Part shown: positions 32,197 through 53,193 of the stretch, piece by piece
Layout: each line of letters opens with the position of its first letter
Position numbering within the stretch: position 1 is the stretch's first letter
From: Monocercomonoides exilis PA203
Taxonomy: Eukaryota; Protista; Preaxostyla
Assembly: GCA_001643675.2 (NCBI GenBank)
Contig: LSRY02000004.1
Coordinates: 682,001 to 746,000 of the forward strand
Direction: 5' to 3'
Length of the DNA stretch: 64,000 bases
The notes under the pieces: model-generated
What the model was told of the DNA's origin: nothing
Seen by the model: only the letters and a program-made list of their open reading frames with translations
The model's database searches: none
Position numbers and translations under genes: made by a program

Positions 32197-35100
32197 TTAT
32201 GCTTCTTCATTATTTTTCGTTTCGAAATATCCAGTTGGCACATTCTCTTGGTTATTGTTTTTCTCTTTTTCATTGCTCTCGCAAATCAATCTCTCATTTC
32301 TCTCATCTGATGTGTTTTCAATGCAAATCGCATCAGTCACAGTGAGCATCACAGCTCCTGGTGGAAAGAGCAGAATAAACTCTCTCTTCAAATATAGAAG
32401 CGATGGACGCTCGTTCATCTTGCTCGACAAGCACAGCTTTACAATTTCTTTAAGTGTTTGTTTTTGGATTGCTTCGATTTTTGGCCTCTCTCCATTCACA
32501 ATCTTCTGCCCTGCCACCTCTGCCTCATACTCCCCAAACGGGATCTGAAGTGTCAAACATTCCCACAACATCATCCCAATCGAAAATGCAACAGTCTTCT
32601 TCGTCGCCTGCTTCTTTGTCCCGCTCAACAGCTCAGGCGCCATCCACCTCAGGCACTCTTTTTTGAAACTATCTTCATCCTCAAATGCTGACGAGGGCAG
32701 AGAGTCACTTTCATCATCATCATCACTTGCAGATGTCACAACAGTCGATGAAGAGATGGATGATGAATCTGAGTCATCAGAAGAGAAGTCAGAGTGCATC
32801 ACAATGCATATCACCATATGTTCTGAGAACAGCACAATGTGCGGGCTCAGATTCGCAAGTGACTGAAGCTTGTTTTCCATTTCATCAAACGAGTGGAGCG
32901 CAAGATTCGCCACCAAGAACAGGATCTGTGCAGCTGTCACTTCTCTCTCTTCCAGCGATCCGATCGGCATCTCCTTTGTCTTGTTCCTTCCATGCAGCAG
33001 CATGAACAGCGAATCTCTCAGATCCACAATCAGCTTCTCATGAGGTGAAGAGCAGGCCATTGCATCCACCAGATTCGACATCGATGAGGTGGTTGGGCAA
33101 AGATCCTCCCCTCGAACAAATGTGGAATCTGAATCGGTTGTTGAAGTGGTTGAAGTGGATGAAGTGGATGAGATGGATGGAGATGGTGTTCGCTTCCTAA
33201 TCTCTTCCTCTTCATCTTTCTCCAATGCCCAATCAGGAATCTTGTCCGAATCTCTTCCAAGGATGTATTCTGTCGAACCGCTCTCACTCAAAAGATGCTC
33301 GGATGATTCAGAATGTTGCATATTCGTATCATACACCCTCTTCTTTATCCTCTCTTCATTCTTCTTCTCAGCTTCCCTCTCCGCTCTCCTCCATTGCTCC
33401 TCTGGTGAAATCTCCATCGTCACCATCTCAAATGCCTTCGGATCTTTTCTGATATTTTCATTCACAATCTCTCTCAGATCTTCTGCTTCATTCTTCACCT
33501 TCTTCCATCGAACAATGAATATTATTGATACAATTAACAGTATTACCACGATCACAATACAAACAATCAAAGCCCATGAGATTTTTACTTCTTTTCCTCC
33601 TTCAACAATCTTTTCATCATCTGTTGGTGGAATCACGCTTGAATTCTTCAAAATGAATGAATTTGTTGATGAAGGAGATTCTGCGTTTCCAAACAAAATG
33701 AGCACGCTCACCTCAATTTCATCTCCACAACTTCTGATGAGATCTTTTGCCACACTTCCTTCAACTTCTCTTTCTGACAAGAATCCATTTGAATCAAAAT
33801 CATAATGTTCAATCTCATTCTCTTCTCCCTTCCTCTTCACAACTGAGAATGACAGATTGCATGGAACAAGAAGCAATCCTTTGAATGTCAACTTCATTCT
33901 ATCTGTCTCTTCCTTTGCTTCCACACTTTCCAACACAGGAATGAAGAATGGTGAATCTCTTTCAGAAGCAATCCCTTCAAAACTGCACCCATCATTCAAC
34001 ATCCAAAGAGATGTGTTTCTCTCCAATCCATCACCTCCTTTCAAACTCATCACATTCAATGTTCCTGAATCTGAACAGACGATATTCCTTCTCAATGATG
34101 GATATCCTTCAATTGATGGATTATTGTTCTCAAATTTTCCATCATTAACAGTCATCGCCCCTCCACTGATTGTTATTCCACCTTCTGGTGAATTTGAGAA
34201 TGTTGTGTCTTTCATTATCACGGAACTCTTCACAATATCCATAAGAGATCCATCCCATCTGCACGTCTCCTCTTCCACATTCAAATACTTTTCATTTTTT
34301 CCCTTTGAACTCCCATCAAAAATGCAACTGTCCATTTTCACATCCAAACAATTTTCCAATTTCATTAATTTCCCTTTTGCTTTGTTTGAACTGACTCCGC
34401 CCATTGTGCAATTTGCCAATTGCGTTGTCTTTTTCATTGCCAAGCAAGATATCAATGATTCTTCATTTCCCTCAACTGTGATATTTTCTGTATGAAACTT
34501 CTCCATATTTAATTGTTCACTTTCATTAATATCTATCAGAGAAATTTTAATTGTTGAATTGCAAATCGTTAATGAATCAATTACAGATGGAATTGGTGAT
34601 GATAGATATACTGAAGATTTTTGAAGAATGAGATTTGACATTGTGCATCCATCAAGTTGCAATTCTCCTTTTTCCATTTTGATTATGTGAAATGGAATGT
34701 TTGCAAATTCTATATTTCCTTCTTCATTTGATTGTTTTGATGTGAATGAACAGTTCATTATCTCAAGAATCCCTCCATCCGGAGAGATTAATGATTCATG
34801 CGAAGAGATGAAATTCGAATCGAACGCAAAGTTCACTCTCATCAATGAGACTGACCCTGTTGTTGTTATCAAAGCATCTCTTGTTTTTCCAATGCTTGAT
34901 TTCACTTCAACTTCACACAAATCTCTGCTCTTTGAACTCAAACTCATTTCTTTCAGATCAATTTCTCCTCCTATCACACTTTCTTCAACAATGAATATCA
35001 GACTCAGAATATCTGAGGTCAAGTGAATCAGCCCATGATCAATTGAATAGCATGGAAGAACATTTGTTCCACATTGCTTTTCATTCGATCCACTCATACT

Positions 35101-38100
35101 GCTCACAATGATTGTGTCGCTCTGATGAATAGTCACAAATTCAATCAGATCTGTATCACTTTGGTAATCACACCTATCAATCCCAAATATCGCATTCATC
35201 CGTGAATAATAGCCCTCTCGAAGATCAAACCGAAATTGACTTTCATTGATCTGTGATGTGATGTTGAAGCATTCAATGAAAATATCATTCCCCACTTTTG
35301 CTGTGTTTGAACTGAATTTCATTCCCACAAATGTGAAATTCAATTCTCCTCTTTCCTTTGTTGCCAGATACACCCCTCCTCCTTTCCCATTGGTGCAGCT
35401 GCAACGGCTGATTGTCGAGTCAATCATCTTCATCGATCCAAATGCACCCAATGCGAAGAATATTGCTCCTCCTTTTTCACTTGTTTCTGCTTTGTCTTCA
35501 GTTATGCTGCTCTCATTCACAACTAAATCTATCTTTTTCTCACTTGCTGACTCAAAAATGCTTGCTCCATTGTCACTTCTCTTCACTCCTGAAATTGATG
35601 AATTGCTAATTTTGAGATTCATTTCCTTTCCTTCTTCATTTATCTTCAATTCTGGTTCAGATTTCTTGATTGATAAAATACATCCTTTGCTTTCATTCAA
35701 CGATTCCACTCGAACATTCACAAAATGGCAAGTTATTCCAGAATCATGAATGACAAACATGCTATCTCCAACATTGCATGATTCCATCGACAAATCACTC
35801 ACATCCACACTTCCACCAATTACATCCACAAACACACAATCAAATCCATTGTTCACTTCTGCATCTGAATGGAACGAACATCCAGTTATCACCAATTCTC
35901 CATTTTTGTTGGAAATAATTGTTTTGGCTGAGTTGTCAAATCCAGTTGTCAGTTGCAGTTGGATATTCATCAATTCAAGATGATTATAATTTCCCATGAA
36001 ATATTCCAGTTGACTTCCAATTGCTTTTTCAAAATTCAATTTGGCTTTAACATTCTCTTCTCCCATATTTACACTCTTTTTGATTAAATAATTGGACGTG
36101 TTGAACGAATCTCGAATTATTGTTGATCTTTCAATTTGAATTGTTTTCAATCCAGTCCCCATTTCCATATTTTTAATCCCTTTCCACATTGTGAAACAAG
36201 GTTCTTCCTCACTTCCACAACGTGACACATCAAATCCTTCGGATGAGATAAATATCTCAGTTGAGCTGTATGAAATCAGAAACATGAACAAATCTTTGTT
36301 TGAATGAAAATCATCACTTCCAACAAACAAATTGTTATCGCCTTTCATTAAAGAATAATTGAACTTGAATGAATCATTTGTCACTGAATTATTAAAATCC
36401 TTTCCTAAAATGAACATGTTCTTTCCAATGGCTGCTTTGTTGTTCTCAAAAGTGAGGCCAACATCAAAAAGAAATGGCTTCTCATTCAAACATTCTTGAC
36501 AATCCAAATACAAAAACCCTCCTTTTCCATTGCTCTTTGAAAGAGAACAGAAAGTTGCATTTGTTGACTTTATCTCAATTATCTCATCATCTTTCAATGC
36601 GATATTTGCATCGCCTCCTTCTTCACCGCTTCCAGTGTTCATAATGTTTGAAAAGTTGTTACTTTCAAGCAAGACAGAAGAAGATATCATCAATGGAGAT
36701 TCACCAAATGAGGATTCATCCAAACTGCATCCTTCCATTGAACAATTCAACAATTTCACTTTATATTCCTGCTCATTCTCTCCTTCATTCATATTTGCTG
36801 AGGAAAGCGAAATTGAAAACAACGAAACTGTTGATTTCACTTCTGAAATCGTGACAAATTCCAGCTCAACCATCTTTCCTGTTGATTTGATCAAGGAAAA
36901 TCCAATTGTGTTTTCCTTCCCTCCATTCACACTCATCTCACAGTTCTTCATGTGCAACTCGCCATTTTGAGTGCTCGATTCAATCACTGCTGAGATTGTT
37001 CTGTTAAAACTCGATGGAATAACAATTCCAATAAACTCAATTTCTGTTACAGATGAAGATTTCAGAACACATTCTTCGGAGCCACTCACTTCTCTTTGGC
37101 ATTCGATGCCAATAACTGTCTCGACTTTGGCCTTCACATTCATTCCCCCTGCATCAATGCATCCAGTTACAGTCGATTTTGAGCATAAAATAATTTCCTG
37201 TTTTATATTCTGTGCTCTCTTCAGATGTCCCACCCCGTAGTCCACACTCTTGCATGGCGCTTTCTCCAATCCGCAATATACCTCTTCCACTCCAGATGCT
37301 CCATCCACATATATCGCGTCAGCAAAGAAACCATCGAGAAATATAAACAAATCGACATCCCATCCACAAAATGCCTCTGTTCTGTCATGCCCAACGATCG
37401 AGTTGTCTTTCTGACTGATGCTTGTCATGAAGGCGAAGGAAGAGTCATTTACAGAAGCGGCAAATGATTCACACACGAAATACATATCTCTTCCGACACA
37501 GGCCTTGTTGGCTGAAAACACAATATTGGTGATGGAAAAGGAGGATTCCGACAGTTGCGAGCCATGATTGTACTCGATCATGAGAGCCCCGCCTCTTCCT
37601 CCAGAACTTGTATCCTCGCTCACAGAGCAGGTGGAGAAATTTGTGTTCCTCACAGAAAATGTGTTGGCAGTGGATGATGAGGCGAATGAGATGCACCCGC
37701 CATCTGTGGCAGTCTGTTGGTTTTGTGGAGCTGAGTTGATGTTGGTGATGGTGCAGTTGGCGAGGGAGAGGGAGAGGGCAGGGGAGGTGGCAGAGGAGAG
37801 GACACAGCTGGCGGGGGTGGCAGTGGAGGTGATGTGAGTGATGTTGGAGGAGTTGAGGGAGAGAGGATTTGTGAGGGAGGTGAGGTGGAAGATGCTTTGG
37901 CTGTTGAGGGCGAGACTGGTGATTGCTGTGTGGTTGAGGGCGAGGGAGCCAGCAGTGAGGAAGAAGAGGGGAGTTTTTATTGTTATGGAGGTTGTTCCGG
38001 TGATGGTGGTTGTGTTGAGATTGAGGGAAGGGGAGTTATCGGAGAGGTGGAAGAGGATGGGGGTAATTGGATTTGAGGAGTTGTGGACGATGGCGAGGGC

Positions 38101-40239
38101 GGAGACTGTGAGGGAACCCTGGGTCTGTTGGAAGAGGGCAGACGAGGCAGATGGATCTGGTGAAAAAGATGTTAATGATGATGAGGATGATGAAAACGAT
38201 GAAAATGATGATGTTGATTGTGATGACTGTGAATATGAGATTGGTGGTTGAGGAATGCCATCAGAGGATATGATGGTGGCATCTGTGCCATTTCCAGTGA
38301 TTTTTGTGTCAACCGCGCTGAAGGTGAGTGTTTGAAGAGGAACAAATGTTGAGGTGAGGAGGATAAGAGATGTATCTTGGAGTGGGATGAAGCCGCTGAG
38401 TACATACTCTATTGTTGCGCATGGGATAAGTTGTGGCCTACCGCATGCATCGATATCGATTCCATCGTTTGCAACGATTTTGTTCGAAGGGATAAGAGAA
38501 AGCCAACTGTTGTACTCATCGTTTGTCGCAGTTCCTGCATTCCATACTCGATTTGTTGGAGTTGTTGAGCCGCAATTCTCGAACGGAGATTTTATGATGC
38601 TGCTTCCATTGAAGAATACATCATTTCCTCTACCGTCAGTGGCGGAGTTTCCATCGAAGAAACAAAAAGTGATGAATTGTTCTTCATTCATCCAAGAAAA
38701 AGTTTCATCAAAGTATGCACCAGCTCCACCATATGTATTATCAGTCAGTTTGTTGTTTATAAACTGGCATTCATTGATTGTAAACTGATTTGGTTTGTTT
38801 GATGGAATTTTATAAAATGTTATTGCACCTGAGGAATTGCAACCAACATTTGCAATACATTCGCATTCTGAAAACAGGAATTGAGAATTTGCAGGCATTT
38901 TATCGAGCCAAAAGTACCATCCAGTTCCACCACTTAGCGTTGTAAAACATTTTTTGGCCAAGTTATCTGAGAATGCCCAAATAGATTCGGCTCGTGGATT
39001 CGACAAAACTGCAGCTCCTCCACTTGATGCAGAACAATTTGTGAAATTGGATTTTGAGATGTTGATTTTCATCAAACCAAAACAAAACAATGCACCACCA
39101 TGATCATTTGAAGAGCATTTGTCAAATGAACAAGATGTAATTGTAAGATTTGCTTCGGCGCATTCAACATTTAGTGCACCGCCCCAACTATCTCCGCTGT
39201 TTGAATCATTCCATTCGCACCATTCAAAGCGATGACTGTTCACATCAAACGAAGTCAATCTTCCAGGTGATTTTCTGTGAGTTTCATTTCCTTCATATAC
39301 AACAGCAGCATTTGATGAAGAACGTGTTTGGTGGAGAAAAGAGACATTGAAGGCAGAGAGAGAAGTGGAGGGGCTGTTGAGGTTGGGGAGGATGGCGCCA
39401 TCGATGGGGTTGTGGGTGTGTTTGAAGATGGTGGAGTGGATGGAAAGTGATGAGTGAAGAGATAAGAAGTGTATTGTGTTAGTGTTTGTGGTGGTAATGA
39501 ATGAGTTGTGTGTGTGTGTGTGTTTAGCAGGAATGGAGTGTGTGGATTGTGGTGCAGTGATGTTTGTGAAGAGTGCGTCCGAGAGATGGAGATCGAGGTG
39601 GATTTGGAGATGGCGATGGAGAAGGGAAGAAGAAGAGGATAATAAAGGAGAAAAAAGGAAGGGCTGGGTGAGGGAGATGAAAGAGGAGAAAGAGGAGTGG
39701 GAAATAGAGAATGAGGCAGGGGCTGGGGAGTGTATTTCTGGGAGGAGATTGTTTGGGGTGGAGAAGAGGGGGAAGGAGAAGATGGCAGGTTGAGGGGTGA
39801 TGAGGGAGAAGTTGGTGAGGGAAAGGGAGCTGTGCGAAGAGATGAAAAGTGGAGATTTTGTTGTCGGGTTGACTTGGCAAGTGGAAGAGAAGATTGCAGC
39901 AGCTGAGCGGTGTTGGGCAGTGAGGAGTGGACAACCAACGAGGGGGATGATGTTGAGATGGGCCACACACAACGAGGTGTTGATGATATTTAGACTTGTT
40001 TGAATGCTGCAAATGTGATTGTCAACTGAATTTTCATTTTTTGCTACATGAATGTCAAAATAATTGTTGTATTCTCCTTTTCCATTTTCGATGTTGATCT
40101 TGCCTTTTTGCATCTCCTCGTTCCATTTTTGATGATATGGCCTATCTGCAATGCATTCTCCATAATAGCAGTTAATAACAAGAAAAAGCAATGCAACAAT
40201 ATTGTATGCAGCTCTCATATGGGTGGAGCACCTCGCCAT
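32197..40239 (-). CDS. Giant intronless receptor-like protein A (2680 aa): signal peptide, 4 beta-helix-type modules, TM, TKL-like pseudokinase
   Basis: Module starts CGRPQLIPC, CGLEKAPC, CGSEEEPC, CGTNVLPC; GGA/FxxN motifs; TM ALIVCIVIVVILLIVSIIFIV; kinase C-lobe RWMAPELL…FSIGMMLWECLTLQIPF…CL…ERPS. Confidence 0.9.
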   Translation of the reverse strand: MARCSTHMRAAYNIVALLFLVINCYYGECIADRPYHQKWNEEMQKGKINIENGKGEYNNYFDIHVAKNENSVDNHICSIQTSLNIINTSLCVAHLNIIPLVGCPLLTAQHRSAAAIFSSTCQVNPTTKSPLFISSHSSLSLTNFSLITPQPAIFSFPLFSTPNNLLPEIHSPAPASFSISHSSFSSFISLTQPFLFSPLLSSSSSLLHRHLQIHLDLHLSDALFTNITAPQSTHSIPAKHTHTHNSFITTTNTNTIHFLSLHSSLSIHSTIFKHTHNPIDGAILPNLNSPSTSLSAFNVSFLHQTRSSSNAAVVYEGNETHRKSPGRLTSFDVNSHRFEWCEWNDSNSGDSWGGALNVECAEANLTITSCSFDKCSSNDHGGALFCFGLMKINISKSNFTNCSASSGGAAVLSNPRAESIWAFSDNLAKKCFTTLSGGTGWYFWLDKMPANSQFLFSECECIANVGCNSSGAITFYKIPSNKPNQFTINECQFINNKLTDNTYGGAGAYFDETFSWMNEEQFITFCFFDGNSATDGRGNDVFFNGSSIIKSPFENCGSTTPTNRVWNAGTATNDEYNSWLSLIPSNKIVANDGIDIDACGRPQLIPCATIEYVLSGFIPLQDTSLILLTSTFVPLQTLTFSAVDTKITGNGTDATIISSDGIPQPPISYSQSSQSTSSFSSFSSSSSSLTSFSPDPSASSALFQQTQGSLTVSALAIVHNSSNPITPILFHLSDNSPSLNLNTTTITGTTSITIKTPLFFLTAGSLALNHTAITSLALNSQSIFHLTSLTNPLSLNSSNITHITSTATPASCVLSSATSPALSLSLANCTITNINSAPQNQQTATDGGCISFASSSTANTFSVRNTNFSTCSVSEDTSSGGRGGALMIEYNHGSQLSESSFSITNIVFSANKACVGRDMYFVCESFAASVNDSSFAFMTSISQKDNSIVGHDRTEAFCGWDVDLFIFLDGFFADAIYVDGASGVEEVYCGLEKAPCKSVDYGVGHLKRAQNIKQEIILCSKSTVTGCIDAGGMNVKAKVETVIGIECQREVSGSEECVLKSSSVTEIEFIGIVIPSSFNRTISAVIESSTQNGELHMKNCEMSVNGGKENTIGFSLIKSTGKMVELEFVTISEVKSTVSLFSISLSSANMNEGENEQEYKVKLLNCSMEGCSLDESSFGESPLMISSSVLLESNNFSNIMNTGSGEEGGDANIALKDDEIIEIKSTNATFCSLSKSNGKGGFLYLDCQECLNEKPFLFDVGLTFENNKAAIGKNMFILGKDFNNSVTNDSFKFNYSLMKGDNNLFVGSDDFHSNKDLFMFLISYSSTEIFISSEGFDVSRCGSEEEPCFTMWKGIKNMEMGTGLKTIQIERSTIIRDSFNTSNYLIKKSVNMGEENVKAKLNFEKAIGSQLEYFMGNYNHLELMNIQLQLTTGFDNSAKTIISNKNGELVITGCSFHSDAEVNNGFDCVFVDVIGGSVDVSDLSMESCNVGDSMFVIHDSGITCHFVNVRVESLNESKGCILSIKKSEPELKINEEGKEMNLKISNSSISGVKRSDNGASIFESASEKKIDLVVNESSITEDKAETSEKGGAIFFALGAFGSMKMIDSTISRCSCTNGKGGGVYLATKERGELNFTFVGMKFSSNTAKVGNDIFIECFNITSQINESQFRFDLREGYYSRMNAIFGIDRCDYQSDTDLIEFVTIHQSDTIIVSSMSGSNEKQCGTNVLPCYSIDHGLIHLTSDILSLIFIVEESVIGGEIDLKEMSLSSKSRDLCEVEVKSSIGKTRDALITTTGSVSLMRVNFAFDSNFISSHESLISPDGGILEIMNCSFTSKQSNEEGNIEFANIPFHIIKMEKGELQLDGCTMSNLILQKSSVYLSSPIPSVIDSLTICNSTIKISLIDINESEQLNMEKFHTENITVEGNEESLISCLAMKKTTQLANCTMGGVSSNKAKGKLMKLENCLDVKMDSCIFDGSSKGKNEKYLNVEEETCRWDGSLMDIVKSSVIMKDTTFSNSPEGGITISGGAMTVNDGKFENNNPSIEGYPSLRRNIVCSDSGTLNVMSLKGGDGLERNTSLWMLNDGCSFEGIASERDSPFFIPVLESVEAKEETDRMKLTFKGLLLVPCNLSFSVVKRKGEENEIEHYDFDSNGFLSEREVEGSVAKDLIRSCGDEIEVSVLILFGNAESPSSTNSFILKNSSVIPPTDDEKIVEGGKEVKISWALIVCIVIVVILLIVSIIFIVRWKKVKNEAEDLREIVNENIRKDPKAFEMVTMEISPEEQWRRAEREAEKKNEERIKKRVYDTNMQHSESSEHLLSESGSTEYILGRDSDKIPDWALEKDEEEEIRKRTPSPSISSTSSTSTTSTTDSDSTFVRGEDLCPTTSSMSNLVDAMACSSPHEKLIVDLRDSLFMLLHGRNKTKEMPIGSLEEREVTAAQILFLVANLALHSFDEMENKLQSLANLSPHIVLFSEHMVICIVMHSDFSSDDSDSSSISSSTVVTSASDDDDESDSLPSSAFEDEDSFKKECLRWMAPELLSGTKKQATKKTVAFSIGMMLWECLTLQIPFGEYEAEVAGQKIVNGERPKIEAIQKQTLKEIVKLCLSSKMNERPSLLYLKREFILLFPPGAVMLTVTDAICIENTSDERNERLICESNEKEKNNNQENVPTGYFETKNNEEA

Positions 40240-40504
40240 GAAAGAAGATGAAAGAAAAAACAGAAAATTAAAAATTTATGCGCCCTTAATTTATTGAAAA
40301 GTGTTATAAAAATGAGGAAAAATGATTGCAGTTGTGAAAAATACTGTAATTTGTTTCAAATAATTTATTCAACCTTATTATTATTTGTTTTCCATAACAC
40401 TGCGAAAAAATACAGAAAAGTCTAAAATAGAAAAAAATATATGATAATATTGAGAGGAACAAAATTCATCATGCTTAATACTTTTTAACCATTTGCTCTG
40501 TGAG

Positions 40505-40506
<2 letters not shown>

Positions 40507-40552
<46 letters not shown>
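40507..40552 (+). repeat. Poly(T) tract, 46 nt
   Basis: Seen directly. Confidence 0.95.
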
Positions 40553-40558
<6 letters not shown>

Positions 40559-40750
40559 AACTTTCGTTCGAGTTTTGATCAAAGTTTTTATCTCAATGGG
40601 ATTGTGAAAAGAATAATTACTCTTTAAAAAACATCATCGTGTGCAATATGTGTTAACAGTTAAAGATCAATTTTTCGAAAATCCCATGTAGATTACAATT
40701 TTGATCAAAACACGAACGAAAGAATGATTTCGAAAAGGTTTGGCCATATA
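40553..40750. repeat. Foldback/MITE-like element, second copy
   Basis: Arms 40553-40610 and 40672-40730 are imperfect inverted repeats (CTTTCGTTCGAGTTTTGATCAAA / TTTGATCAAAACACGAACGAAAG); the reverse complement aligns to ~14736-14895. Confidence 0.7.
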
Positions 40751-44200: not shown

Positions 44201-47200
44201 AGATTTGTGTCGCTCTTGTGGTTTGTGGAGTCGATTCCGTAAATAGCATTCAACCGCGTATATGCTGTGTCTCGCAAGTCAAAATAGAATTGCGTCTCAT
44301 TGATCTGGCTTTCGATGTCAACACACTCCACAAAAATATCATTCCCCACTTTCGCGCTGTTTCCTTTGAATGTCATCTTCTCAAACAGAAACGAGAGGGC
44401 ACCCTCAAAATTTGCATATATGTAAATCCATCCTCCTTTTCCGTTGTCGTTGCTGCATCCGCACTGAATCACTGATGACTTGCTCATTGACAGAGCTCCT
44501 TCGCTATGAAGCTCCTCAAAAACACCGCCACCCTTCTCGGAACCAACTGCCTTGCACGAATCAAATGTGCATCCGCTGATTGATATCACTGAAGCACAGC
44601 CAGACGAACTGATAATTGCAGGCCCGTTTCCATTCCGAGTGATCAGCTGGAATGTGGAGTTTTTGATGGCGACAGAGCAGTCAGCAGCATTCTCCTTTTG
44701 GAATGAGCGAGAAACTATTTTCACAAAACTTACTCCAGAAAATGTACATCCCGAAGCCGCAAGATGCTGCATTGCACAATCGCATCCGTTGCTGATCGAA
44801 AACACACCCATCTCCGACATCACATTCTCAACTGACAGCTTCGAAACATTCAGCACTCCGCTTTCCATCAACAAGAACCCAACCTTCGCTGGAGCATCTC
44901 CACGTATCTCAGCTACAAACGAACAATCGCTTATCCCAATCACCCCACTTTTTCCAACAAATGAATACTGCCGCTCGTTCCAAAACCCTTCCGACAGTAC
45001 AACTGAAATCCTATTCAGTTGCAAAACGCCCTCGCTGCTAATTGCGGGATCGGTGCCACTTTCTGTCTTGTTTGCAAAAATCAGCTTCCCTTGATTATGT
45101 TCTTCTGTTTCAACTTGTTCAATAATAAAGTTCGACAGCACGAACGAGTCCTGCACAATTGTTTCATCTGATATTTTAATCCACTTCTGAGGAGCACTTT
45201 CATCAATCTGCTTCATCCCTTTCCACATGCCCTTGCACGGATCCTCTTCGCTTCCGCACCTCATAATATCGTATCCACCTGAACTCACAAATATTGTTTG
45301 GCTCACGTATGTCTCCAAGAAACGGAGCAACCCAGTGTCTTCCCAGACTAAATCCCTTCCACAAAACAGCAGTTTGTCTTCTCTTCTTTTCGTGAAGTCA
45401 AAGCAGAGTGTTGAGAGTGTCACACTTTTGTTCAGATCCCCTGCCGAGATGAATATGTTTTTTCCTGCCTGCGCCTTGTGGCCAGCAAATGAAACATCTT
45501 CTCCAAAAACAAAAGGAGTGCCAGCCAAAGCACCCTGGCATTCAACAAACGCAAACCCGCCTCTTCCACATTCTTCAGAGCAGCAGCAGTCATCTGTTTC
45601 TGTTTGGCTCATCAAAAATGTCGCTTCACCCACCAGCTCCACATAAACTGCTCCTCCCTTCTGGCTCGGCTTCGCAGATATCGATGAAAAATTGCATCCA
45701 GATATTTCGCACGAGGATGTCAGCCAAACAGGCGTTGACGAGAAAGACAGTGAAGTGAAATCGCAATTCAGCAATTGAACATCGCCTCCTTCAGAATGAA
45801 TGAGGCAGAACTCCAAGTTTGATGCGCTGTTGGATTTGAAGGTGCATCTATTGAGCGAAAGGCAAGAATCGGCTGATTCAGACAAAAGAAGAGTATTTTC
45901 GTTGTTTACGAAAGAAGAAGGAAGCGAAAATTGAATCAATTCAAACTTCAATTCTTTCGAGTTCTGAATAATTGATTTTTTTGAATCACTTGTTTCCATT
46001 AAATTCTCAAACAGCATCACACACTTCTCATCTGCCTTGTTCGGCACAACTTTGAACAATGAGAGGTCATAATGGTTCCTGATATTTGCTTCTGTTTCAA
46101 TTCGTATAACCCGATTCGGTGCTTCCAAATCGATGTTTTCATATCCTCTCCAAAACGACAGGCAAGCGAATTCCGCACTTCCACACCCCAAAATGTCCAT
46201 TCCACCCCTTGAAACAAGAATCGTATCATCCTTTCTTTGGATCAGGAATAGCAGAAGATCAGTTACAGATCCTTTCAGCAAAACATTATCTGTGCCTTTC
46301 AGATCAACAATGTTTTCGTTTCTCTCATTCTGCAGCTGAAACGCAAACCTTTGTCTCACAACAGATGCATTCACGTCTGTGCTCAACACAAATATGTCTT
46401 TCCCTTCAAATGCACAATTATCTGCAAATGTTATTTCTGTCAGTTTTATGCTCAGCAAGGGATTCTCTGAAATATCCAGATACAATCCACCTCCTCTTCC
46501 GCCTTCCTCGCTTGCTGAACACGACCTGATGCTTGTGCCGTTCATCTTAGCATCGCTTTCTCCCTCAACGGAAATAAGTCCACATCCTCCGTTCCCTCCT
46601 TCGTTCCTACAACCCTTCATGCTTGTCCCATTCTTCCAGTTCAGGGTCTTCACTTTCTTCAGCACAGCAAACCCACCATTCTCAAATGAACAGTTTGTGC
46701 TTTTCAATTTATTCAAAAAAATCTCAGTTCCCCCTTCTCCAACAACCATTCCTTTCCCGCTTGATCGGATGTTACTCACTTCCACGCTGTCAAAAGTGCA
46801 CCCAACCTCGCCGCTCAAAAAGATTCCGCAGTCAGCTTTATATTCCATGTTCTTTATAACCACTCTATCCAGCGAGATCTTTCCACCTTTCCCTGTAATT
46901 ATCCTCATGTTTGTCTCCGCCAATGTTTCCGGATCAGCATTTCCGAATGAGCACTCCACAAAATACGTTTTCCCCACACTAACTTCCACAAGCTCAGCGA
47001 AATCTGATGTTTCAGGCAGCTCAAATCCAATCTTCGAAATCGTCAGTGTTGTGAGCGTGGTTCCAACTGCCATCTTCAAGTGCCCCTCTTTCCCCACAAT
47101 CACCCGACTCCCGTCCTCTCCTTTCCCTTCAATCGTCGTCGGTTCGTTTTCCCTCTCGATCTCTCCACTCAGCTCACACGATGAAAGAATTCGCAGGACG

Positions 47201-50200
47201 CGCTTCTCCTCAGTCATTTTTCTTGAAGCATACCAAAGCTCCTCGCAAGGATAATCGTCAGCGCCACACCCGTCTGTATGGCCATTGAGCGTGTTCACAT
47301 ATATTATTTCGTCCGCTCTGGGGAACAGATACTTCAGAAGCGTGTCTGTTCCATCGGGAAATGTTGGATCAATCACCCACATCGTTTCCTCCTCCTGGCC
47401 TTCTGTGGCTGATCCTGCCCATTTATTTCTGTCAATCGTAATCCGCGGAGTGGGGCACACAAGATACACATCGTATCCCAGCATCGCATCGTTGCTCAGG
47501 AATTTGTTGTTCTTCATCGAGTATCCAACCTCGCTGCTCAAAAACTCCATGTGCAACCCTCCCCCCAAACCATCCGCTTTCCTCACTTTGCTCTCTTCAA
47601 CCGTGTTGTTGTTGAACAGCAGCTCCCCGTTGGCAGATACAGTTGTGATGATGCTTCCTCCTTTCGAACCACTCGCCAAGCAGTTGATTGAAGTAAATGA
47701 ACAAAAATTCACGCTCAAACTCTTCCCGGCTCCAACTCTCCCCGTAACCACAACTCCGTTTCCTTCGTTCCTCGTCAAAAGACTGAAGTTGCTCTTTTCA
47801 ACTGTTGCACTCGACAATTCTTCAACGAATAAGGCCCCGTGGTTCCCAAACTGTGTCGGCCCAGATATTTTCGAGTTTTTCATTTCTACATGGCTGCTGG
47901 ACTTTACAGCAATCAGTCCTTCAACTGATCCCGTCTTTAGGTTGTTCCATTCCACATCTTCCAGAGTGCATCGGCTGCTCGTCCCGCTCAGTTCAACCAC
48001 TGGCGCTCCCAGCAGTTCTATTTCGTTCAGCACTCCCCTCAGAATATGGAGACTCCCACCTCTCACAGTCACATATCCAAAGTCGATCTTCTTTGATTGC
48101 GCATTCATTGAGCAATCAACCAGCGAAAGTGCGGAGCCACTGCACAGGAATAGACACTTTCTTTCAGCTGCTGTAAATGTTGTTGAAACATTGAATGCTA
48201 TTCCACTGAATGAGATTGCATTGCTTGTATCGATGAGCCCTTCTCCTTCTCCTGTTCCATCAGATATCACATTTATCAGTGTTCCGTTTGTCTCTGCTTC
48301 AATGTCCATCTCTTGCGAACTCAAAACAATCGTATTTGCAAAGCAGAAACGACCTGTGAGCCTCAAACTCGCCTTCGAATCCCCAAATCGCACCAAACCC
48401 CCATACTGCAGCGTTCCGCACGGATAATCCGAAAACCCACATCCTGTGTAATCAAAGCTGTTCTCCTCTGCTCCGCCAATAAAGCAAGGCTCTCCGAATT
48501 CTCGGAAATACAACACGAGAGGAATGTGAAATTCTTTATTTGTTGTGCTTCTCTCAAAGCCCATCATATCTTCAGCCAATATGGTCTCTGTTTTAAAGCA
48601 CTGCAGCCAATCCCCAATAATCTGCCTCAGATCTTCTCCGTCAACAAACAGCTCCTTTCCTTTCCAAGCATTGCAACCGCTGAAACTGATATTGTCGAAG
48701 GCTAGGCTTCTGATGCTTTCGTGCAAAAAAAGATACATTGCACCGCCTAATCCATTTCCCACCGATTCGCGATCTTCTGAAGGCACCATGCAGTTCTCAA
48801 AACTTGTGCTTTTCACGCTCAAAAAGTTCCCGCTTCCAACCTTCCCCATGACTCCCCCGCCTCGAATTCCATTCCCTTCGTCACATGAGCCAGTGAAGTT
48901 GCAACTTTGGATTGTGATACTTTTTTCATCTCCGTTTGCTTCATTGATATATAAGCATCCACCGTCTCCATTTATCCTCCTCGTTCCAGTCAAGCTGCTG
49001 TTCTCTATCTTTATTGAATTGTAGTTGTCTGCAAAGATGGGTGAAGTTGTGAATGTTGTTGCTTGTTCCATTTTGAATCCACTTATCAGAAGATTCCCGC
49101 TTTCTACAAAGATCACATTGAAGGAAACAGGATCATTTGTATTTTCTGAAGAGAAATCCACACAACAGTTGGAGATGGAAAGCGACGATGAAGAGAAAAG
49201 AAAGGCTTTTCTTGCAGCTGCGAACAGCCTTTGCACATTCAGTGACAGATTTGAAAGGGAAAGAGGAGAGGAGCACATCACCAGTCCATCCTGTATGGCT
49301 CTGTCTGTGTCTCTAACCGAAATAGGCACAAGCGCCTCAGAATAGATAGTCGCTGATTTGGTCCAAATCACAACTTCCTGTTGTATTATTGACCTTGAAA
49401 GAACTTTGATGGTGTTCAATGGATCGCTTATTCGGTTCTCAATGCAGTAATCGATTGACAAGCAAGCAGAAGAAGGAAATCCACAGTGAGTGTGATCAGC
49501 TCCATTGTCGCTGTCAGTGATAATTTCTGATTGAAGAATGCAAAGATACACATGCAGAGGAATCACAAGAGAAGCACTTCCATTTTCGCTTCCGCTCAAA
49601 GCCAAAGCGTCTGACGGCAATTCCGATGAATCAAAAAATCCAATTGAAGACGAATTGATCATTTGGGAAAGTAAAATCCCACTCTCACATCCAACAAACA
49701 CATCCTTTCCATATTCAGCTTTGTTCTTTGTTTCCTTTGAAAATACAACTTCATTCTTTATTTCAAAAGAAGAAGACACATAGCCACAGCGGATGCATAT
49801 TCCTCCTCCTTTCCCTCCACATCCTTCTTCGCTTGGTGCACAGCATCCCTCGAAACAAGTTGAGCCATTTACAATCAGAATATCATTTTCGCCTAGCCAA
49901 GCACTCATCCCTCCTCCTTCTCCTCCATCCCCATAAACGCAGCAATCACTGAAGCCGCAACCATCGATCACAATCTCTCTATTGCGGTTATTATTCAACA
50001 CGTTGTTCTTCGCAATCGAAATACATCCTCCATTCCCATTCATCCTCTTGATGCTGCACATGTTGCATCCAGCACAGTTTAGCATCCCAGCTCCATTCAA
50101 ACTGATCAACGAAGCGGATCCAAATGTAATCTGCGATGTTGTGGAAAATCGGTTCAAAAACAGGCTCCCATCGTTTATCTTGATAAATCCAAATCCAAAT

Positions 50201-53193
50201 GCTGCGTTTCCGCTTGATGAGCATTTGAGCGAGCAATCAGCCATTGACAGTTCCTCAGACTGGCACAAAAGAAAACAAGAATGCACCCCAAGCTGTGAAG
50301 ATGCTGAAAAACTCAGATTCGAAATGGAGGTTGCAATCTCAACTGTCACCATTCCTTCAGATAGGCTGACAGTTGTACTCGATACTTTAATTTCTCGCCC
50401 TCTTGTGGGACTTTTCACTTCCCATCCATAAACATTAAAGATCAGAGATTCTGTCCATTCAAAGTCTGCATTCAGTGTGATAATTCTTTTGCTGCTGGGA
50501 AAGCGAAGTGCTGCTGCATATCCAATGCTTCCACATGGATAATTGGCTGTGCCACATCCTGAAAAATCTCTGTTTTTAGCTCCTCCAACAAGGGCTGTTC
50601 CTGAAAATGTCTGGAGATATGCCAGAAGAGGAACTGGATTTGTCCTGCACTGCTCTTCAAACCCCATCAGATCATCATCAATCATCCCTGTTTGCGTGAA
50701 CCCGAAAGTGCCCCTCGTTATTGTTGAGCTCAACGAAATTGCATCAACAAATATGTTGTTCCCCTTCCAGGCTTCGCATCCGTTGAACGTAGCATCTCGT
50801 ATCGCAAAGCTCGACGAACTTCCTGTCACTTTCAGATGCATTCCTCCTCCTTTTCCTTTGTTTATGCTGTCCTGTGGCGCTGTGCATCCCTCCATTTCAA
50901 TTCTTTTTGTGGAACCGATTGACACTTTCCCACCAGCATCCAGGAAGAAATTGATAGATCCTCCATTCCCTTTGTTGCACATGCACCTTTCGAATCCCAG
51001 TTCATCCAAATTCAGTTCGTCTCCAGAAGTTAAAGTCACATCAAAAGCCGATCCACTTCCTTCATTTCTCATGATGTTTCTGAAAGTTGTATTCTCAAAA
51101 GTGAAACAGGGCAGTGTAGATGACTCAATCCGGAGAGCAGACACATCAGAAAACATCATGGATTCAACAGTTGTTTTTGACATGTTAAATTGGCCAGCTG
51201 AAATGGATGCAAATGCTGTTGCAAATGGAGAAACTTGCGCTGTCTCAGAAGTTATCTTGCATGAACTGAGCACAAGCTCTCCAGACGCTGAAGAAACGGA
51301 GAACAAAGGCAGCGAAGTGGATGCAGAAGAGTTCCTAATGATGAACAACCCTGTCAGGAAAGCATATCCAGATAATATTTGGAAAAGAGCATTGCCATTT
51401 GAAGAATCTGCACTCAACTTTGTTCCAAAATTACTTGATCCTTCAAAAATCAGATATTTCGAATTAATTGCAAGCGATTGTTCCGCATATGATCCTGTAT
51501 TAATATAGATATGAGCTGGTTGATCCTTTCTTATCGAAGTTGCATCACGGATAGAATTGTATACCGTTAAGCATGGCGAAGTCTTCCAGCCACATAACGC
51601 TTCGTCTCTTCCCAAAGTGTCAACAAAAACCTCAGTTTTTTTAATCCAAGCGCTTTTATCACCACCAACTGCAAAAACGAGACGATTTATTTCGGTAGAG
51701 CTTCTTGACAAGCAACATATGAATTGACTTTTATTCAACACACCTTGCCAAGGAATTGCTGCATAAATATCTTTGCCATCTCCAAGCGCATCACACCCAA
51801 TAAACAAACAATAAGAAAGTGAACTGTAGCGAGCCAAAGAAGCGTTTCTTGAGTCAAAATAGATTGCTCCACCAATTGTTTTATTGGCACTGCAATTTTC
51901 AAAAACAATGTTTGAATAGGATATATTTACTCCTTCCCCATTCCAAATAGCGCCTCCTCCATTACACTCATAATGAATGTCTGAGGCAAAGCAATTGCAA
52001 AATGAACAATCAGCTAAAATATCATCACTTGATATTTTTCGATGCATATGAATGCATCCTCCTCCATATTTTGATTCACAATATGTCATGATGTTATTCT
52101 GGATCGTCACAGGACCATTTCCTTCACATGGAGCAATGCATGATGCATAATTAGTTGTTTTGATAGAACTGAAAGTGTTGTTGATAGATTGAAATATGTA
52201 ACAATATTTTTCGTATATGCATTGCAAAGATGTTGAATTTAGAAAATCTGTATTTTTAACAATGCAAGAACCTGAAGAAGTATGAAAAATGCAATATTCG
52301 GAATGATTTTCATACAAGCAGTTATCAACACGCGTGTCCTCTGAGCCTGTGTGTTTTATCATCAAACCAATTGTTTTGGAGCATCTCAAAAAAGTCGAGT
52401 TCAAAAGATTTTGAGAGCCATCTGAAATTTTTGGAACAATGCAGCCTTCGGTCGGGTTGGTCATAGATGAAACAATGCAGGACGACAGAGTGAATGACGC
52501 GCAATATTTGCAAAATGTGCCTCTCTCGGGGTATTGCTGCGATATGTTCTGGAAGGTGCTGGATTGCATTGAGATGCAGTGAAAATTTGATGATTGGACA
52601 AGCGGCTTTGAATTGCACAACGAAAAAGATGAAAATACAGAGCCCTCAACCTCAACACTGCATTGATAACCTTGATGTGCATCTGCCCGGTGAACGGAAA
52701 CCAACGATGGAAGAAGGTGATTCGATCGAGTCGGAACCAAAGACAAATTGAAAAAGCAAATGGAACTGTCGCATGAATGAATAAAAGCATTGGGTAATTG
52801 ATTTGGCGAAGAAAACAGACAGCTTCCTGCAAAAAATGTTGATTGGCCAAATAATGACACAATTGCACTTCCCCCTGCTGAATTGAATTGAATATTCAAG
52901 CAACCTATGGACGAATTACAAGATGCAATCGATGAAACAACAAAAGTTTGGTAAAACACTTCTTTCATATTTATTTCGGTTGGGAAAGCCATCATTCTTC
53001 TTTCAGCGCTTTCATCAGAACTTTTTTGATTTTCTTTAAAAATCCTCGAACATCCAACGCATAAGCAAAACGATGAATTTTTTTCGTAACTGCTAAATAT
53101 TTTTATGTTTTGCACGTTTTCACTTGTTTCACATCGAATGATTGTAATAAGGAAACATGAAATAAACAATAACTTTGATTTCATAAATATCAT
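41248..53193 (-). CDS. Giant intronless receptor-like protein B (3981 aa): signal peptide, 8 beta-helix-type modules, TM, TKL-like pseudokinase
   Basis: Module starts CGWKTSPC, CGTANYPC, CGFPSSAC, CGFSDYPC, CGADDYPC, CGSAEFAC, CGSEEDPC, CGTLKLPC; TM VIIIVLVIILLIVLIVAVVLAV; tail nearly identical to gene A. Confidence 0.9.
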   Translation of the reverse strand: MIFMKSKLLFISCFLITIIRCETSENVQNIKIFSSYEKNSSFCLCVGCSRIFKENQKSSDESAERRMMAFPTEINMKEVFYQTFVVSSIASCNSSIGCLNIQFNSAGGSAIVSLFGQSTFFAGSCLFSSPNQLPNAFIHSCDSSICFFNLSLVPTRSNHLLPSLVSVHRADAHQGYQCSVEVEGSVFSSFSLCNSKPLVQSSNFHCISMQSSTFQNISQQYPERGTFCKYCASFTLSSCIVSSMTNPTEGCIVPKISDGSQNLLNSTFLRCSKTIGLMIKHTGSEDTRVDNCLYENHSEYCIFHTSSGSCIVKNTDFLNSTSLQCIYEKYCYIFQSINNTFSSIKTTNYASCIAPCEGNGPVTIQNNIMTYCESKYGGGCIHMHRKISSDDILADCSFCNCFASDIHYECNGGGAIWNGEGVNISYSNIVFENCSANKTIGGAIYFDSRNASLARYSSLSYCLFIGCDALGDGKDIYAAIPWQGVLNKSQFICCLSRSSTEINRLVFAVGGDKSAWIKKTEVFVDTLGRDEALCGWKTSPCLTVYNSIRDATSIRKDQPAHIYINTGSYAEQSLAINSKYLIFEGSSNFGTKLSADSSNGNALFQILSGYAFLTGLFIIRNSSASTSLPLFSVSSASGELVLSSCKITSETAQVSPFATAFASISAGQFNMSKTTVESMMFSDVSALRIESSTLPCFTFENTTFRNIMRNEGSGSAFDVTLTSGDELNLDELGFERCMCNKGNGGSINFFLDAGGKVSIGSTKRIEMEGCTAPQDSINKGKGGGMHLKVTGSSSSFAIRDATFNGCEAWKGNNIFVDAISLSSTITRGTFGFTQTGMIDDDLMGFEEQCRTNPVPLLAYLQTFSGTALVGGAKNRDFSGCGTANYPCGSIGYAAALRFPSSKRIITLNADFEWTESLIFNVYGWEVKSPTRGREIKVSSTTVSLSEGMVTVEIATSISNLSFSASSQLGVHSCFLLCQSEELSMADCSLKCSSSGNAAFGFGFIKINDGSLFLNRFSTTSQITFGSASLISLNGAGMLNCAGCNMCSIKRMNGNGGCISIAKNNVLNNNRNREIVIDGCGFSDCCVYGDGGEGGGMSAWLGENDILIVNGSTCFEGCCAPSEEGCGGKGGGICIRCGYVSSSFEIKNEVVFSKETKNKAEYGKDVFVGCESGILLSQMINSSSIGFFDSSELPSDALALSGSENGSASLVIPLHVYLCILQSEIITDSDNGADHTHCGFPSSACLSIDYCIENRISDPLNTIKVLSRSIIQQEVVIWTKSATIYSEALVPISVRDTDRAIQDGLVMCSSPLSLSNLSLNVQRLFAAARKAFLFSSSSLSISNCCVDFSSENTNDPVSFNVIFVESGNLLISGFKMEQATTFTTSPIFADNYNSIKIENSSLTGTRRINGDGGCLYINEANGDEKSITIQSCNFTGSCDEGNGIRGGGVMGKVGSGNFLSVKSTSFENCMVPSEDRESVGNGLGGAMYLFLHESIRSLAFDNISFSGCNAWKGKELFVDGEDLRQIIGDWLQCFKTETILAEDMMGFERSTTNKEFHIPLVLYFREFGEPCFIGGAEENSFDYTGCGFSDYPCGTLQYGGLVRFGDSKASLRLTGRFCFANTIVLSSQEMDIEAETNGTLINVISDGTGEGEGLIDTSNAISFSGIAFNVSTTFTAAERKCLFLCSGSALSLVDCSMNAQSKKIDFGYVTVRGGSLHILRGVLNEIELLGAPVVELSGTSSRCTLEDVEWNNLKTGSVEGLIAVKSSSHVEMKNSKISGPTQFGNHGALFVEELSSATVEKSNFSLLTRNEGNGVVVTGRVGAGKSLSVNFCSFTSINCLASGSKGGSIITTVSANGELLFNNNTVEESKVRKADGLGGGLHMEFLSSEVGYSMKNNKFLSNDAMLGYDVYLVCPTPRITIDRNKWAGSATEGQEEETMWVIDPTFPDGTDTLLKYLFPRADEIIYVNTLNGHTDGCGADDYPCEELWYASRKMTEEKRVLRILSSCELSGEIERENEPTTIEGKGEDGSRVIVGKEGHLKMAVGTTLTTLTISKIGFELPETSDFAELVEVSVGKTYFVECSFGNADPETLAETNMRIITGKGGKISLDRVVIKNMEYKADCGIFLSGEVGCTFDSVEVSNIRSSGKGMVVGEGGTEIFLNKLKSTNCSFENGGFAVLKKVKTLNWKNGTSMKGCRNEGGNGGCGLISVEGESDAKMNGTSIRSCSASEEGGRGGGLYLDISENPLLSIKLTEITFADNCAFEGKDIFVLSTDVNASVVRQRFAFQLQNERNENIVDLKGTDNVLLKGSVTDLLLFLIQRKDDTILVSRGGMDILGCGSAEFACLSFWRGYENIDLEAPNRVIRIETEANIRNHYDLSLFKVVPNKADEKCVMLFENLMETSDSKKSIIQNSKELKFELIQFSLPSSFVNNENTLLLSESADSCLSLNRCTFKSNSASNLEFCLIHSEGGDVQLLNCDFTSLSFSSTPVWLTSSCEISGCNFSSISAKPSQKGGAVYVELVGEATFLMSQTETDDCCCSEECGRGGFAFVECQGALAGTPFVFGEDVSFAGHKAQAGKNIFISAGDLNKSVTLSTLCFDFTKRREDKLLFCGRDLVWEDTGLLRFLETYVSQTIFVSSGGYDIMRCGSEEDPCKGMWKGMKQIDESAPQKWIKISDETIVQDSFVLSNFIIEQVETEEHNQGKLIFANKTESGTDPAISSEGVLQLNRISVVLSEGFWNERQYSFVGKSGVIGISDCSFVAEIRGDAPAKVGFLLMESGVLNVSKLSVENVMSEMGVFSISNGCDCAMQHLAASGCTFSGVSFVKIVSRSFQKENAADCSVAIKNSTFQLITRNGNGPAIISSSGCASVISISGCTFDSCKAVGSEKGGGVFEELHSEGALSMSKSSVIQCGCSNDNGKGGWIYIYANFEGALSFLFEKMTFKGNSAKVGNDIFVECVDIESQINETQFYFDLRDTAYTRLNAIYGIDSTNHKSDTNLMDFITIHQADTIILSSAPSKNGKNDRQCGTLKLPCLTIGYALSHLTNDVESRLLVDDESFVEKEMDLEDLSIASRKEDPSKLTIFRDIAHTRSSVISTSGSVSVSKIEFFFESDFSSAHHILLTAESGSLSLFACSFSQSQEERSAQTIELTLISIENGQVTASQIKISHMHFSAEASIRIAHLSGCVLFSEMKAEDTVLNKGAFILIEGEQPFSEQQKSGGERSVELKDASFDNVSSAQQEEGIIACSLFKGGICLANCTFSNASSKSEAGSVMSFCDCNNVTLHWNVLRGDLDHSEKNENSKEEHICKWASSVVSFVNSTATLKDITIANSSMGGMSVFGGSMTIEKSEFINNNPKIGNYKSVRRNIICAGSGLLNMTSVKGGDGVKDGSSLWVLNEGCTLGGIAEERESVFFIPELESVEAEEDGSVTRLKFAGLLLVPCNLSFRVVKRVGSEALVERYSFDEGGFVSEAEVLGAVPSKTICEAGEEAEVLVCILFGNADTPSSTKAFILKNGSDPKASGDGKPVESRKGYGYSTVIIIVLVIILLIVLIVAVVLAVRWKKVKNEAEDLREIVNDNIRKDPKAFEMVTMEMSPEEQWRRAEREAEKKNEERIKKRVYDTNMQHSESSEHLLSESGSTEYILGRDSDKIPQWALEKDEEEEIRKRTPSPSISSTSSTSTTSTTDSDSTFVRGEDLCPTTSSMSNLVDAMACSSPHEKLIVDLRDSLFMLLHGRNKTKEMPIGSLEEREVTAAQILFLVANLALHSFDEMENKLQSLANLSPHIVLFSEHMVICIVMHSDFSSDDSDSSSISSSTVVTSASDDDDESDSLPSSAFEDEDSFKKECLRWMAPELLSGTKKQATKKTVAFSIGMMLWECLTLQIPFGEYEAVIAGDKIVKGERPNASSVSMSTHFESIKACLSAKASCRPTLVELKRSFIKYFSKGTVFVTVSDAIDFEDEETDEKEVSASIIYISEKLSGENN

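Follow-up and report, generated by a model that had tools for sequence, protein, structure and literature searches.

This analysis concerns a 64,000-nt stretch of the genome of Monocercomonoides exilis PA203, a mitochondrion-less gut flagellate (assembly GCA_001643675.2, contig LSRY02000004.1, positions 682,001 to 746,000), which is called the window in the following, and two neighbouring genes on its minus strand, here named A and B, which encode giant modular membrane proteins. Both consist of one uninterrupted open reading frame (ORF), exactly as an earlier note made from the sequence alone had described them. Gene A, the MONOS_3581 locus, extends over 32197–40239 and codes for 2680 aa; gene B covers 41248–53193 with 3981 aa.

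Architecture of genes A and B

The two proteins share the same order of parts: putative signal peptide, N-terminal cap, three (A) or seven (B) full modules, one terminal module, a membrane-proximal stalk, a transmembrane span and a cytoplasmic tail. Each has a hydrophobic N-terminus and, as the sole hydrophobic span after the repeat region, one stretch of 22–24 aa followed by RWKK, situated about 430 aa from the C-terminus. Together with a nucleotide identity of 93–100% over about 990 nt of the tail region this is what had been proposed as signal peptide, single membrane span and shared tail. In gene A the hydrophobic N-terminus (about aa 1–28) and the cap (to aa 580) occupy 38500–40239 on the minus strand, as do all following features of both genes; the cap is a low-complexity region rich in S, T, L and H that resembles a module weakly (module hidden Markov model (HMM), E 1.8e-5). 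Its three full modules (aa 581–975, 971–1327 and 1323–1708), recognized by sequence anchors and HMM, lie at 35116–38499, followed by the truncated terminal module T (aa 1704–1985, 34285–35130; HMM positions 3–251, E 1e-28), the stalk (aa 1986–2221, 33577–34284; about 50% identity among paralogues) and the transmembrane span (33493–33576). The tail comprises a core defined by column conservation and by its substitution pattern (aa 2253–2590, 32470–33483) and a hypervariable end (aa 2591–2680, 32200–32469). In gene B the seven full modules (aa 516–3013) are found at 44155–51648, module T, recognized by HMM (aa 3008–3289), at 43327–44172, the transmembrane span at 42514–42585 and the tail at 41251–42492, with the core at aa 3568–3905 and the variable end at aa 3906–3981. 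The caps, weakly module-like in both proteins, measure about 580 aa in A against about 515 aa in B, the stalk about 240 aa in both, and the tail about 430 aa in A and 420 aa in B.

The modules open with a CG-x(4-6)-[PA]C anchor, present four times in A (aa 599, 989, 1341 and 1723) and eight times in B (aa 534, 880, 1237, 1585, 1976, 2337, 2646 and 3026). Anchors are spaced by 309–391 aa, a full module has about 355 aa, and closing motifs of the type FxxNxAxxGx[DN]x[FY] precede most anchors. A module HMM, built from the units of A and B and then rebuilt from 427 paralogue units, matches each full unit of both proteins at E 1e-52 to 1e-80; the periodicity is therefore far beyond chance. In each gene the last unit is cut short and ends at about HMM position 250. 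Thus, anchors and closers are as first noted, but the count of four versus eight modules has to be read as three or seven full modules plus one truncated terminal module. The suggested correspondence in order of the last modules was recovered as well: A aa 846–2649 is colinear with B aa 2201–3964 at 46% identity, against about 20–22% for the remaining module pairs.

Across the family, the closest relative of a module is nearly always the module at the equivalent position in another protein, and cross-class scores define four types: first, middle, last and terminal. In the seven-module class, each of the five inner modules finds its nearest relative in the one middle module of the three-module class. 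Accordingly, B holds one first-type, five middle-type and one last-type module, and A a single middle-type copy. The number of full modules ranges from one to eight among 118 paralogous proteins, with three as the mode (65 of 118) and seven as the second class (10 of 118). Module order is conserved (cap, first, n times middle, last, truncated terminal, stalk), and module number varies through gain or loss of the middle type followed by duplication of the whole gene. Gain and loss of modules, as proposed in the earlier note, is therefore correct, but free shuffling is ruled out by the fixed order of types and the position-matched nearest relatives. In about twelve paralogues (FTpFFT or FFTpFFFT, for example), a terminal-type module lies inside the chain and another cap with its own series of modules comes after it, so that a single ORF holds two ectodomain units.

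Both genes are present in all four metatranscriptomic libraries of one study. Exact RNA contigs cover the 5' part of the ORF of A up to position 40236, beyond the annotated start, and three regions of B (41134–41520, 42535–42661 and 42949–43264), corresponding to 3' untranslated region, tail and ectodomain. The spacer between the stop of B and the start of A (40240–41247, no strand assigned) served as a silent control; its RNA depth was zero at 40400–40999 in the four libraries. No splice joint was seen in the RNA contigs over the covered parts, and none across the annotated "intron" at 37714–38106. The public model of MONOS_3581 (P0001) has 2102 aa, starts at ORF residue 448 and skips residues 712–842, which leaves gaps at 37714–38106 and 38899–40239 of the window. 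The removed residues form the middle of a beta-helix module, and the ORF is open throughout. The model thus probably lacks the signal peptide and part of a module, and gene models of this family, MONOS_3581 being one example, need repair.

The region 38000–40000, with the cap and first module of A, is peculiar in composition. Both are Ser/Thr/Leu/His-rich low-complexity versions of a module, their coding strand is C-rich (aa 100–340 and 640–860), and the GC skew of the plus strand reaches +0.41 at 38001–40000. The RNA word depth there runs into the thousands, the same words occurring in many transcripts.

Fold of the modules and nature of the tail

A structural model of A aa 1301–1746, one module with the boundaries of its neighbours, was computed with AlphaFold2 (AF2) on an alignment of 150 diverse modules. 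It is all-beta with short strands and has a predicted local distance difference test score (pLDDT) of 95.3 and a predicted template modelling score (pTM) of 0.92. Exhaustive structural comparison (VIA-align) gave Z scores of 23.2 to 16.9 with root-mean-square deviations of 3–4.5 Å over 242–324 aligned residues, and all of the top 50 matches were beta-helix proteins. The best of these are polysaccharide lyases and hydrolases, phage tailspikes, the passenger of the autotransporter Vag8 and the adhesin SRRP. Foldseek also returned beta-helix proteins only. The nearest clusters in the ESM Atlas are prokaryotic DUF1565/Beta_helix/Pel9A-like proteins, and the language-model neighbours of the module include clusters bearing Chlam_PMP. 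In the AF2 secondary structure the CG....PC pair is placed in the loop between a short strand and a capping helix, at the start of each helix. The beta-helix fold expected for the modules is thus borne out by the model and by Z scores of up to 23. The ectodomain is accordingly predicted to be a row of right-handed parallel beta-helices, each of which folds by itself and consists of an N-cap, with the CG....PC pair, and about 12 turns.

When the ten full modules of A and B were scanned with Pfam, no family reached its cut-off. The best score for Beta_helix (PF13229) was 13.5 bits against a cut-off of 25.9, in module 6 of B; module T plus stalk of A reached 8.5 bits, also sub-threshold, and one paralogue (P0046) carries a precomputed PF13229 hit. 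Chlam_PMP (PF02415), the family of the chlamydial polymorphic membrane proteins (Pmps), was not found in the whole proteins A or B at E ≤0.1, nor were the Pmp-middle domain and the autotransporter beta-barrel. The highest Chlam_PMP score among the modules, again in module 6 of B, was 12.5 bits with a cut-off of 20.6, so that at the level of sequence the link to Pmps drawn in the earlier note stays below threshold in A and B. In the whole genome only six places exceed the Chlam_PMP cut-off (24–25.6 bits), inside ORFs of 1244–4138 aa (G000:C36:2190711, 2274697 and 1652127; C16:748272; C58:1402747; C22:398994). Columns conserved to at least 90% across the 150 modules hold G, C, F, A and L alone, which argues against a shared enzymatic site.

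The tail of A matches PF07714 with 43.8 bits (cut-off 23.1), confined to tail aa 272–368 and to positions 161–257, approximately, of the 258 in the profile; PF00069 scores above or near its cut-off. This only kinase-like part, from APE to alpha-I, corresponds to aa 2525–2620 of the protein and to 32380–32667 of the window. A profile search against the PDB returned the C-lobes of ZAK, TAK1, ILK and BTK (E about 6e-7), with TNNI3K also among the best relatives, and the homology is limited to subdomains VIII–XI (APE, alpha-F to alpha-I). Profile positions 1–160, with the glycine loop, VAIK, HRD and DFG, were unmatched in A, in B and in a profile of 120 tails, and the 146–156 aa before APE gave no kinase match to Pfam or PDB profiles even at E ≤10. 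A by-eye reading of LxNLSPHIVLF...HSDF as a degenerate HRD...DFG was dropped because it falls in this region. The truncated pattern is invariant across the 120 tails; an AF2 model on their alignment had a pLDDT of 45.8, too poor to be used for the fold. Judged by these profiles, the tail appears to contain half of a kinase C-lobe, without a detectable ATP-binding lobe, catalytic loop or DFG. This remnant is almost certainly non-catalytic, and catalysis by the tail is implausible. The pseudokinase recognized beforehand would hence be a dead remnant, with its kinase match confined to APE–alpha-I and 146 aa upstream without any.

From the membrane to about residue 2590 of A, most columns are at least 90% conserved across 95–120 paralogues. 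The last 90 or so residues (32200–32469 in A; 41251–41478, 76 aa, in B) vary more than any other part of the proteins: in a set of 55 with ectodomains that are often about 80% identical, the C-terminal ends fall into 36 clusters at 60% identity. These ends, which include the end of the kinase-like lobe and what lies beyond, sort independently of both ectodomain and core. The constancy of the tail, as first noted, therefore holds for the core and not for the end. Acidic clusters are present in both tails, and NPx[YF] is absent from both.

Size of the family and decoupled histories of its parts

In the genome, 101 contigs with 82,301,135 bases in total, the invariant tail motif DLRDSLFMLLHG, back-translated into a degenerate pattern, was matched 954 times with up to two mismatches; the reversed control had no match. 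A protein search with the tail yielded 1460 candidates at first look; each of the 91 scored ones is 73–90% identical to the tail of A, and 72 of these 91 lie within open frames of at least 2000 aa. The annotated proteins matched are 533 of 1474–4690 aa and 130 of 235–749 aa. Word-based protein searches of the databases gave, among the best 120 matches per search, MONOS_ proteins throughout. With about four fifths of the copies taken as long genes, extrapolation would give the family a share of several percent of the genome.

The Nanopore assembly of M. exilis PA203 has been described (PMC8767320). Protein tyrosine kinases were reported as the largest gene family of this organism, with 332 genes, nearly all of them tyrosine kinase-like (TKL), and the family overlaps the unclassified repeats in the RepeatModeler output (PMC8767320, PMC6759080). 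Gene A, as MONOS_3581, carries precomputed PF07714 and PF00069 assignments, and we infer that these 332 "tyrosine kinase" genes are the family of A and B. The surmise that a large paralogous family exists and might already be catalogued is thus correct on both counts, but it is catalogued only as TKL "tyrosine kinases"; in the literature searched, there was no description of M. exilis ectodomains, pseudokinases or Pmp-like proteins.

Among 28 loci for which DNA was compared, the proportions of nonsynonymous (pN) and synonymous (pS) differences vary strongly along the gene: 0.074 and 0.545 in the tail core, 0.44 and 0.69 in the terminal module plus stalk, and 0.46 and 0.74 in the C-terminal end. 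The tail core, with a pN/pS of about 0.14 (uncorrected), is under very strong purifying selection. Family-wide homogenisation does not account for this, since the synonymous sites of the core have diverged throughout the family; conservation of the tail by concerted evolution alone is ruled out.

Locally, the core has been repeatedly overwritten between physical neighbours. Between A and B the nucleotide identity is 93–100% for about 990 nt from just after the transmembrane span and falls to about 50% over the final 100 codons. The gene-conversion tract (32520–33509 in A, 41529–42518 in B, an offset of 9009 nt) contains 19 differences and a run of 603 identical bases (32629–33231 in A), with about 50% identity on both flanks; pS is 0.085 in the core against 0.73 in the adjacent ectodomain. 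The same was seen in two further pairs, with a core pS of 0.000 for L008/L009 and of 0.048 for L016/L011, the latter about 25 kb apart, and flanks of at least 0.5. L008 and L009 are convergent, and their tails plus 688 nt of 3' flank form an inverted repeat of 2094 bp with 99.7% identity.

Gene B has its closest paralogue, B', in an intact gene of 3979 aa about 400 kb away. Between B and B' the pS is 0.04–0.17 in the ectodomain (0.04 in module T) and 0.04 in the C-terminal end, but 0.31–0.41 in transmembrane span, juxtamembrane region and core (0.31 in the core). The high value between low flanks implies that this patch was replaced in one of the two copies. The core of B is near-identical to that of A, and both are about equally close to the core of B' (pS 0.33 and 0.32).

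At the level of the family, the closest ectodomain pairs carry unrelated cores, and tail identity stays flat at about 0.76 whatever the ectodomain identity (95 proteins, Spearman about 0). In 55 three-module proteins the ectodomain segments correlate with each other at 0.67–0.85 and the stalk with the ectodomain at 0.34–0.48, and the correlation of core and C-terminal end with the ectodomain is about 0. Approximately unbiased (AU) tests on FastTree topologies of 29 closely related proteins showed that the trees of distal modules, proximal modules and tail reject one another (delta lnL 400–1440, p ≤0.002), which means that homologous exchange takes place inside the ectodomain too. Concordance of the nearest paralogue between segments is low, at 13–38%, a value that says little in a near-star radiation. 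The family thus diversifies by whole-gene duplication and frequent gene conversion between paralogues, and as conversion swaps homologous segments, the histories of ectodomain, tail core and C-terminal end are independent of one another. Exchange of homologous segments takes the place of the shuffling once suggested, and the decoupling of module and tail histories, which a comparison of trees was to reveal, is confirmed. Congruent trees, a handful of paralogues or modules of another fold had been named in advance as grounds to abandon the idea of a diversified receptor family; found were incongruent trees, 954 tail motifs and modules modelled as beta-helices.

Several features of the DNA around family members may be recorded here. 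The inverted repeat of the convergent pair (L033:1757–3850 and L033:5794–7887, that is G000:C36:537756–539849 and 541793–543886; 99.67% identity over 2094 bp) spans the end of the stalk, the transmembrane span, the whole tail and the 688-nt 3' flank of both members, and its 1943-bp spacer contains a short ORF ending in DDE-like "HVDETS". Similar plus/minus pairs with identical motif DNA, 4.5–5.2 kb apart, occur at C1:2314/7524, 75613/80798 and 189583/194770 and at C6:727390/731842. In the window, the silent spacer between B and A holds an imperfect inverted repeat (40547–40617 and 40666–40736; arms of 71 nt that are 77% complementary and separated by 48 nt). On the plus strand, a 417-aa ORF situated a few kb upstream of B (57427–58680) has a DDE_1 (pogo-like) transposase domain. 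Two ORFs on the minus strand are without any Pfam match (1145–6865, 1906 aa; 59831–63604, 1257 aa), and a third (24886–27042, 718 aa) contains PSI and Kre9/KNH-like domains. The remaining genes of the window are ordinary, among them an amino-acid transporter, DENN and tubulin.

Possible role and relation to known systems

Beta-helix domains typically bind or cut polysaccharides. The reading we prefer, and regard as rather probable, takes A and B as members of a set of about 950 type I surface proteins whose beta-helix ectodomains, diversified by gene conversion, bind ligands, and whose tails contain a non-catalytic docking core. The proteins would stand at the cell surface and their ligands would be diverse, the most plausible candidates being glycans carried by bacterial prey or by the gut surface, a suggestion based on the usual partners of the fold and on the bacterivory of M. 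exilis, which relies on phagocytosis (PMC12308965). The invariant core could act as a common docking or scaffold module coupling binding to one intracellular machinery, for example signalling or phagocytic uptake. A bolder version is possible but rather doubtful: several percent of the genome would then encode about 950 tailspike-like glycan receptors, reassorted by conversion and all plugged into one kinase-derived hub. If true, a phagotrophic gut protist would possess, encoded in its germline, a "prey and microbiota recognition system" so far hidden under the name of tyrosine kinases.

A number of points weigh against the preferred reading. Signal peptide and topology were read from sequence. 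The missing N-lobe was likewise seen by sequence methods, the model of the tail having the low pLDDT given above, and a very divergent but complete pseudokinase fold may be present. What class of ligand is bound is guessed from the fold, among whose nearest structural neighbours enzymes are as frequent as binders, and of the known endocytic motifs none is conserved in the tail. Furthermore, the paralogue sample (118 proteins, 28 loci) was picked by tail similarity to A and represents part of the family, and the RNA evidence consists of assembled contigs, which indicate presence and neither level nor strand.

Among other explanations, a variant surface coat comparable to the variant-specific surface proteins (VSPs) of Giardia survives best, and we still think it unlikely. 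One or few of the roughly 950 proteins would be expressed per cell and switched, with the tail serving trafficking or expression control. The very large repertoire, a variable exterior with a conserved interior and the mosaic nature of genes subject to conversion all agree with such a coat, and the host-associated lifestyle of M. exilis fits what is established for VSP systems and those of variant surface glycoproteins (VSGs). However, the adjacent genes A and B both occur in all four bulk RNA libraries, and the ratio of nonsynonymous to synonymous rates (omega) of about 0.2–0.4 in the ectodomain of a recent pair indicates moderate constraint, not diversifying selection. A core of 335 aa at an omega of about 0.1 goes far beyond the needs of a trafficking tag, M. 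exilis is considered a commensal, and no switching machinery was seen.

Still less probable, in our view, are membrane-anchored polysaccharide-degrading enzymes, in which each beta-helix would act at the cell surface as a lyase or hydrolase on mucin, dietary fibre or the capsules of bacteria. The best structural matches of the module are indeed glycoside hydrolases, polysaccharide lyases and tailspike depolymerases, and M. exilis digests the wall polymers of bacteria and fungi (PMC12308965). Identity to these enzymes is, however, 7–13%, no acidic or basic residue is conserved to at least 90% across the 150 diverse modules, no CAZy-type Pfam family reaches threshold, and the non-enzymatic adhesins Vag8, SRRP and PfbA match equally well.

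It would also be very surprising if the family were largely selfish or decaying repetitive DNA, an amplified set of gene fragments without a current cellular role. It overlaps the unclassified repeats of RepeatModeler, about one fifth of the scored copies lie in short open frames, some copies have stops, and many annotated models are fragments. Against this stand the maintenance of open frames of 8–12 kb, the uncorrected core pN/pS of about 0.14, the transcription of A and B next to a silent spacer, and the 3979 intact codons of B'. Finally, that the proteins are active receptor tyrosine or TKL kinases, as the published annotation has it, is scarcely credible: PF07714 and PF00069 are matched above or near cut-off and "protein tyrosine kinases" is the annotated name, but the match is confined to profile positions 161–257, the glycine loop, VAIK, HRD and DFG have no counterpart, the 146 aa before APE are without a kinase match at E ≤10, and 120 tails invariably show the same truncated pattern. 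Weighing this evidence, we favour a repertoire of non-catalytic surface receptors or adhesins with a common docking core over these alternatives, which appear less likely.

In the model amitochondriate eukaryote, the largest gene family has so far entered the count as 332 "tyrosine kinase-like kinases", and part of it has been masked as unclassified repeats. If its members are non-catalytic giant beta-helix surface proteins, the kinome of M. exilis is heavily overestimated, and the biology of its cell surface and prey recognition would be dominated by a family nobody has studied. The genes also offer a clean natural example in which ectodomain, tail core and C-terminal end of one gene are under different regimes and become re-paired by gene conversion between neighbours.

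By protein-language features and shape, the prokaryotic DUF1565/Beta_helix/Pel9A-like proteins are nearest to the modules. They share the beta-helix and an N-terminal cap motif of the type G-x-D-x-x-x-G/C...P, but are single-domain secreted or surface proteins, and no match to them is seen in A or B at the Pfam level. Giardia VSPs have CXXC-rich ectodomains and an invariant tail of 5 aa (CRGKA), and one VSP is expressed per cell. Like the family of A and B they belong to a metamonad and comprise hundreds of paralogues with variable exterior and invariant cytoplasmic end; unlike them, our family has a tail of about 430 aa and shows co-expression in bulk RNA. The chlamydial Pmps (PMC11166332, PMC10715098) also form a polymorphic paralogous family at the cell surface, with GGA[ILV]/FxxN-type motifs on the coils of a right-handed beta-helix. 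As type V autotransporters of bacteria, they combine one continuous helix with a Pmp-middle domain and a beta-barrel, whereas A and B are eukaryotic type I membrane proteins with separate helices in tandem and a sub-threshold sequence link.

The transmembrane kinases (TMKs) of Entamoeba histolytica (PMC2211552, PMC2880585) likewise form a large protist family, type I receptors in which a variable ectodomain is joined to a TKL-related cytoplasmic domain; a part in phagocytosis has been ascribed to some TMKs, and selective expression is described for some members. By description, TMKs have about 90 members, CXXC-rich ectodomains and mostly a complete kinase domain, whereas the M. exilis proteins bear beta-helix arrays outside and kinase subdomains VIII–XI alone survive inside. 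The Pmp-like proteins of trichomonads (PMC6701047) are again metamonad proteins. By description, about two dozen Pmp genes are expressed there and their short tails contain NPx[YF] endocytic motifs, in contrast to the about 950 genes, the three to nine discrete cysteine-capped beta-helix domains and the kinase-remnant tail of about 430 aa without NPx[YF] in M. exilis. In common with A and B, they form an expanded family with extracellular beta-helix-type repeats and GGA/FxxN-like motifs, in which a single C-terminal transmembrane span followed by a cytoplasmic tail replaces the bacterial autotransporter, and for which a role in adhesion or uptake has been proposed, the proteins with span and tail being linked to adhesion and endocytosis (PMC6701047).

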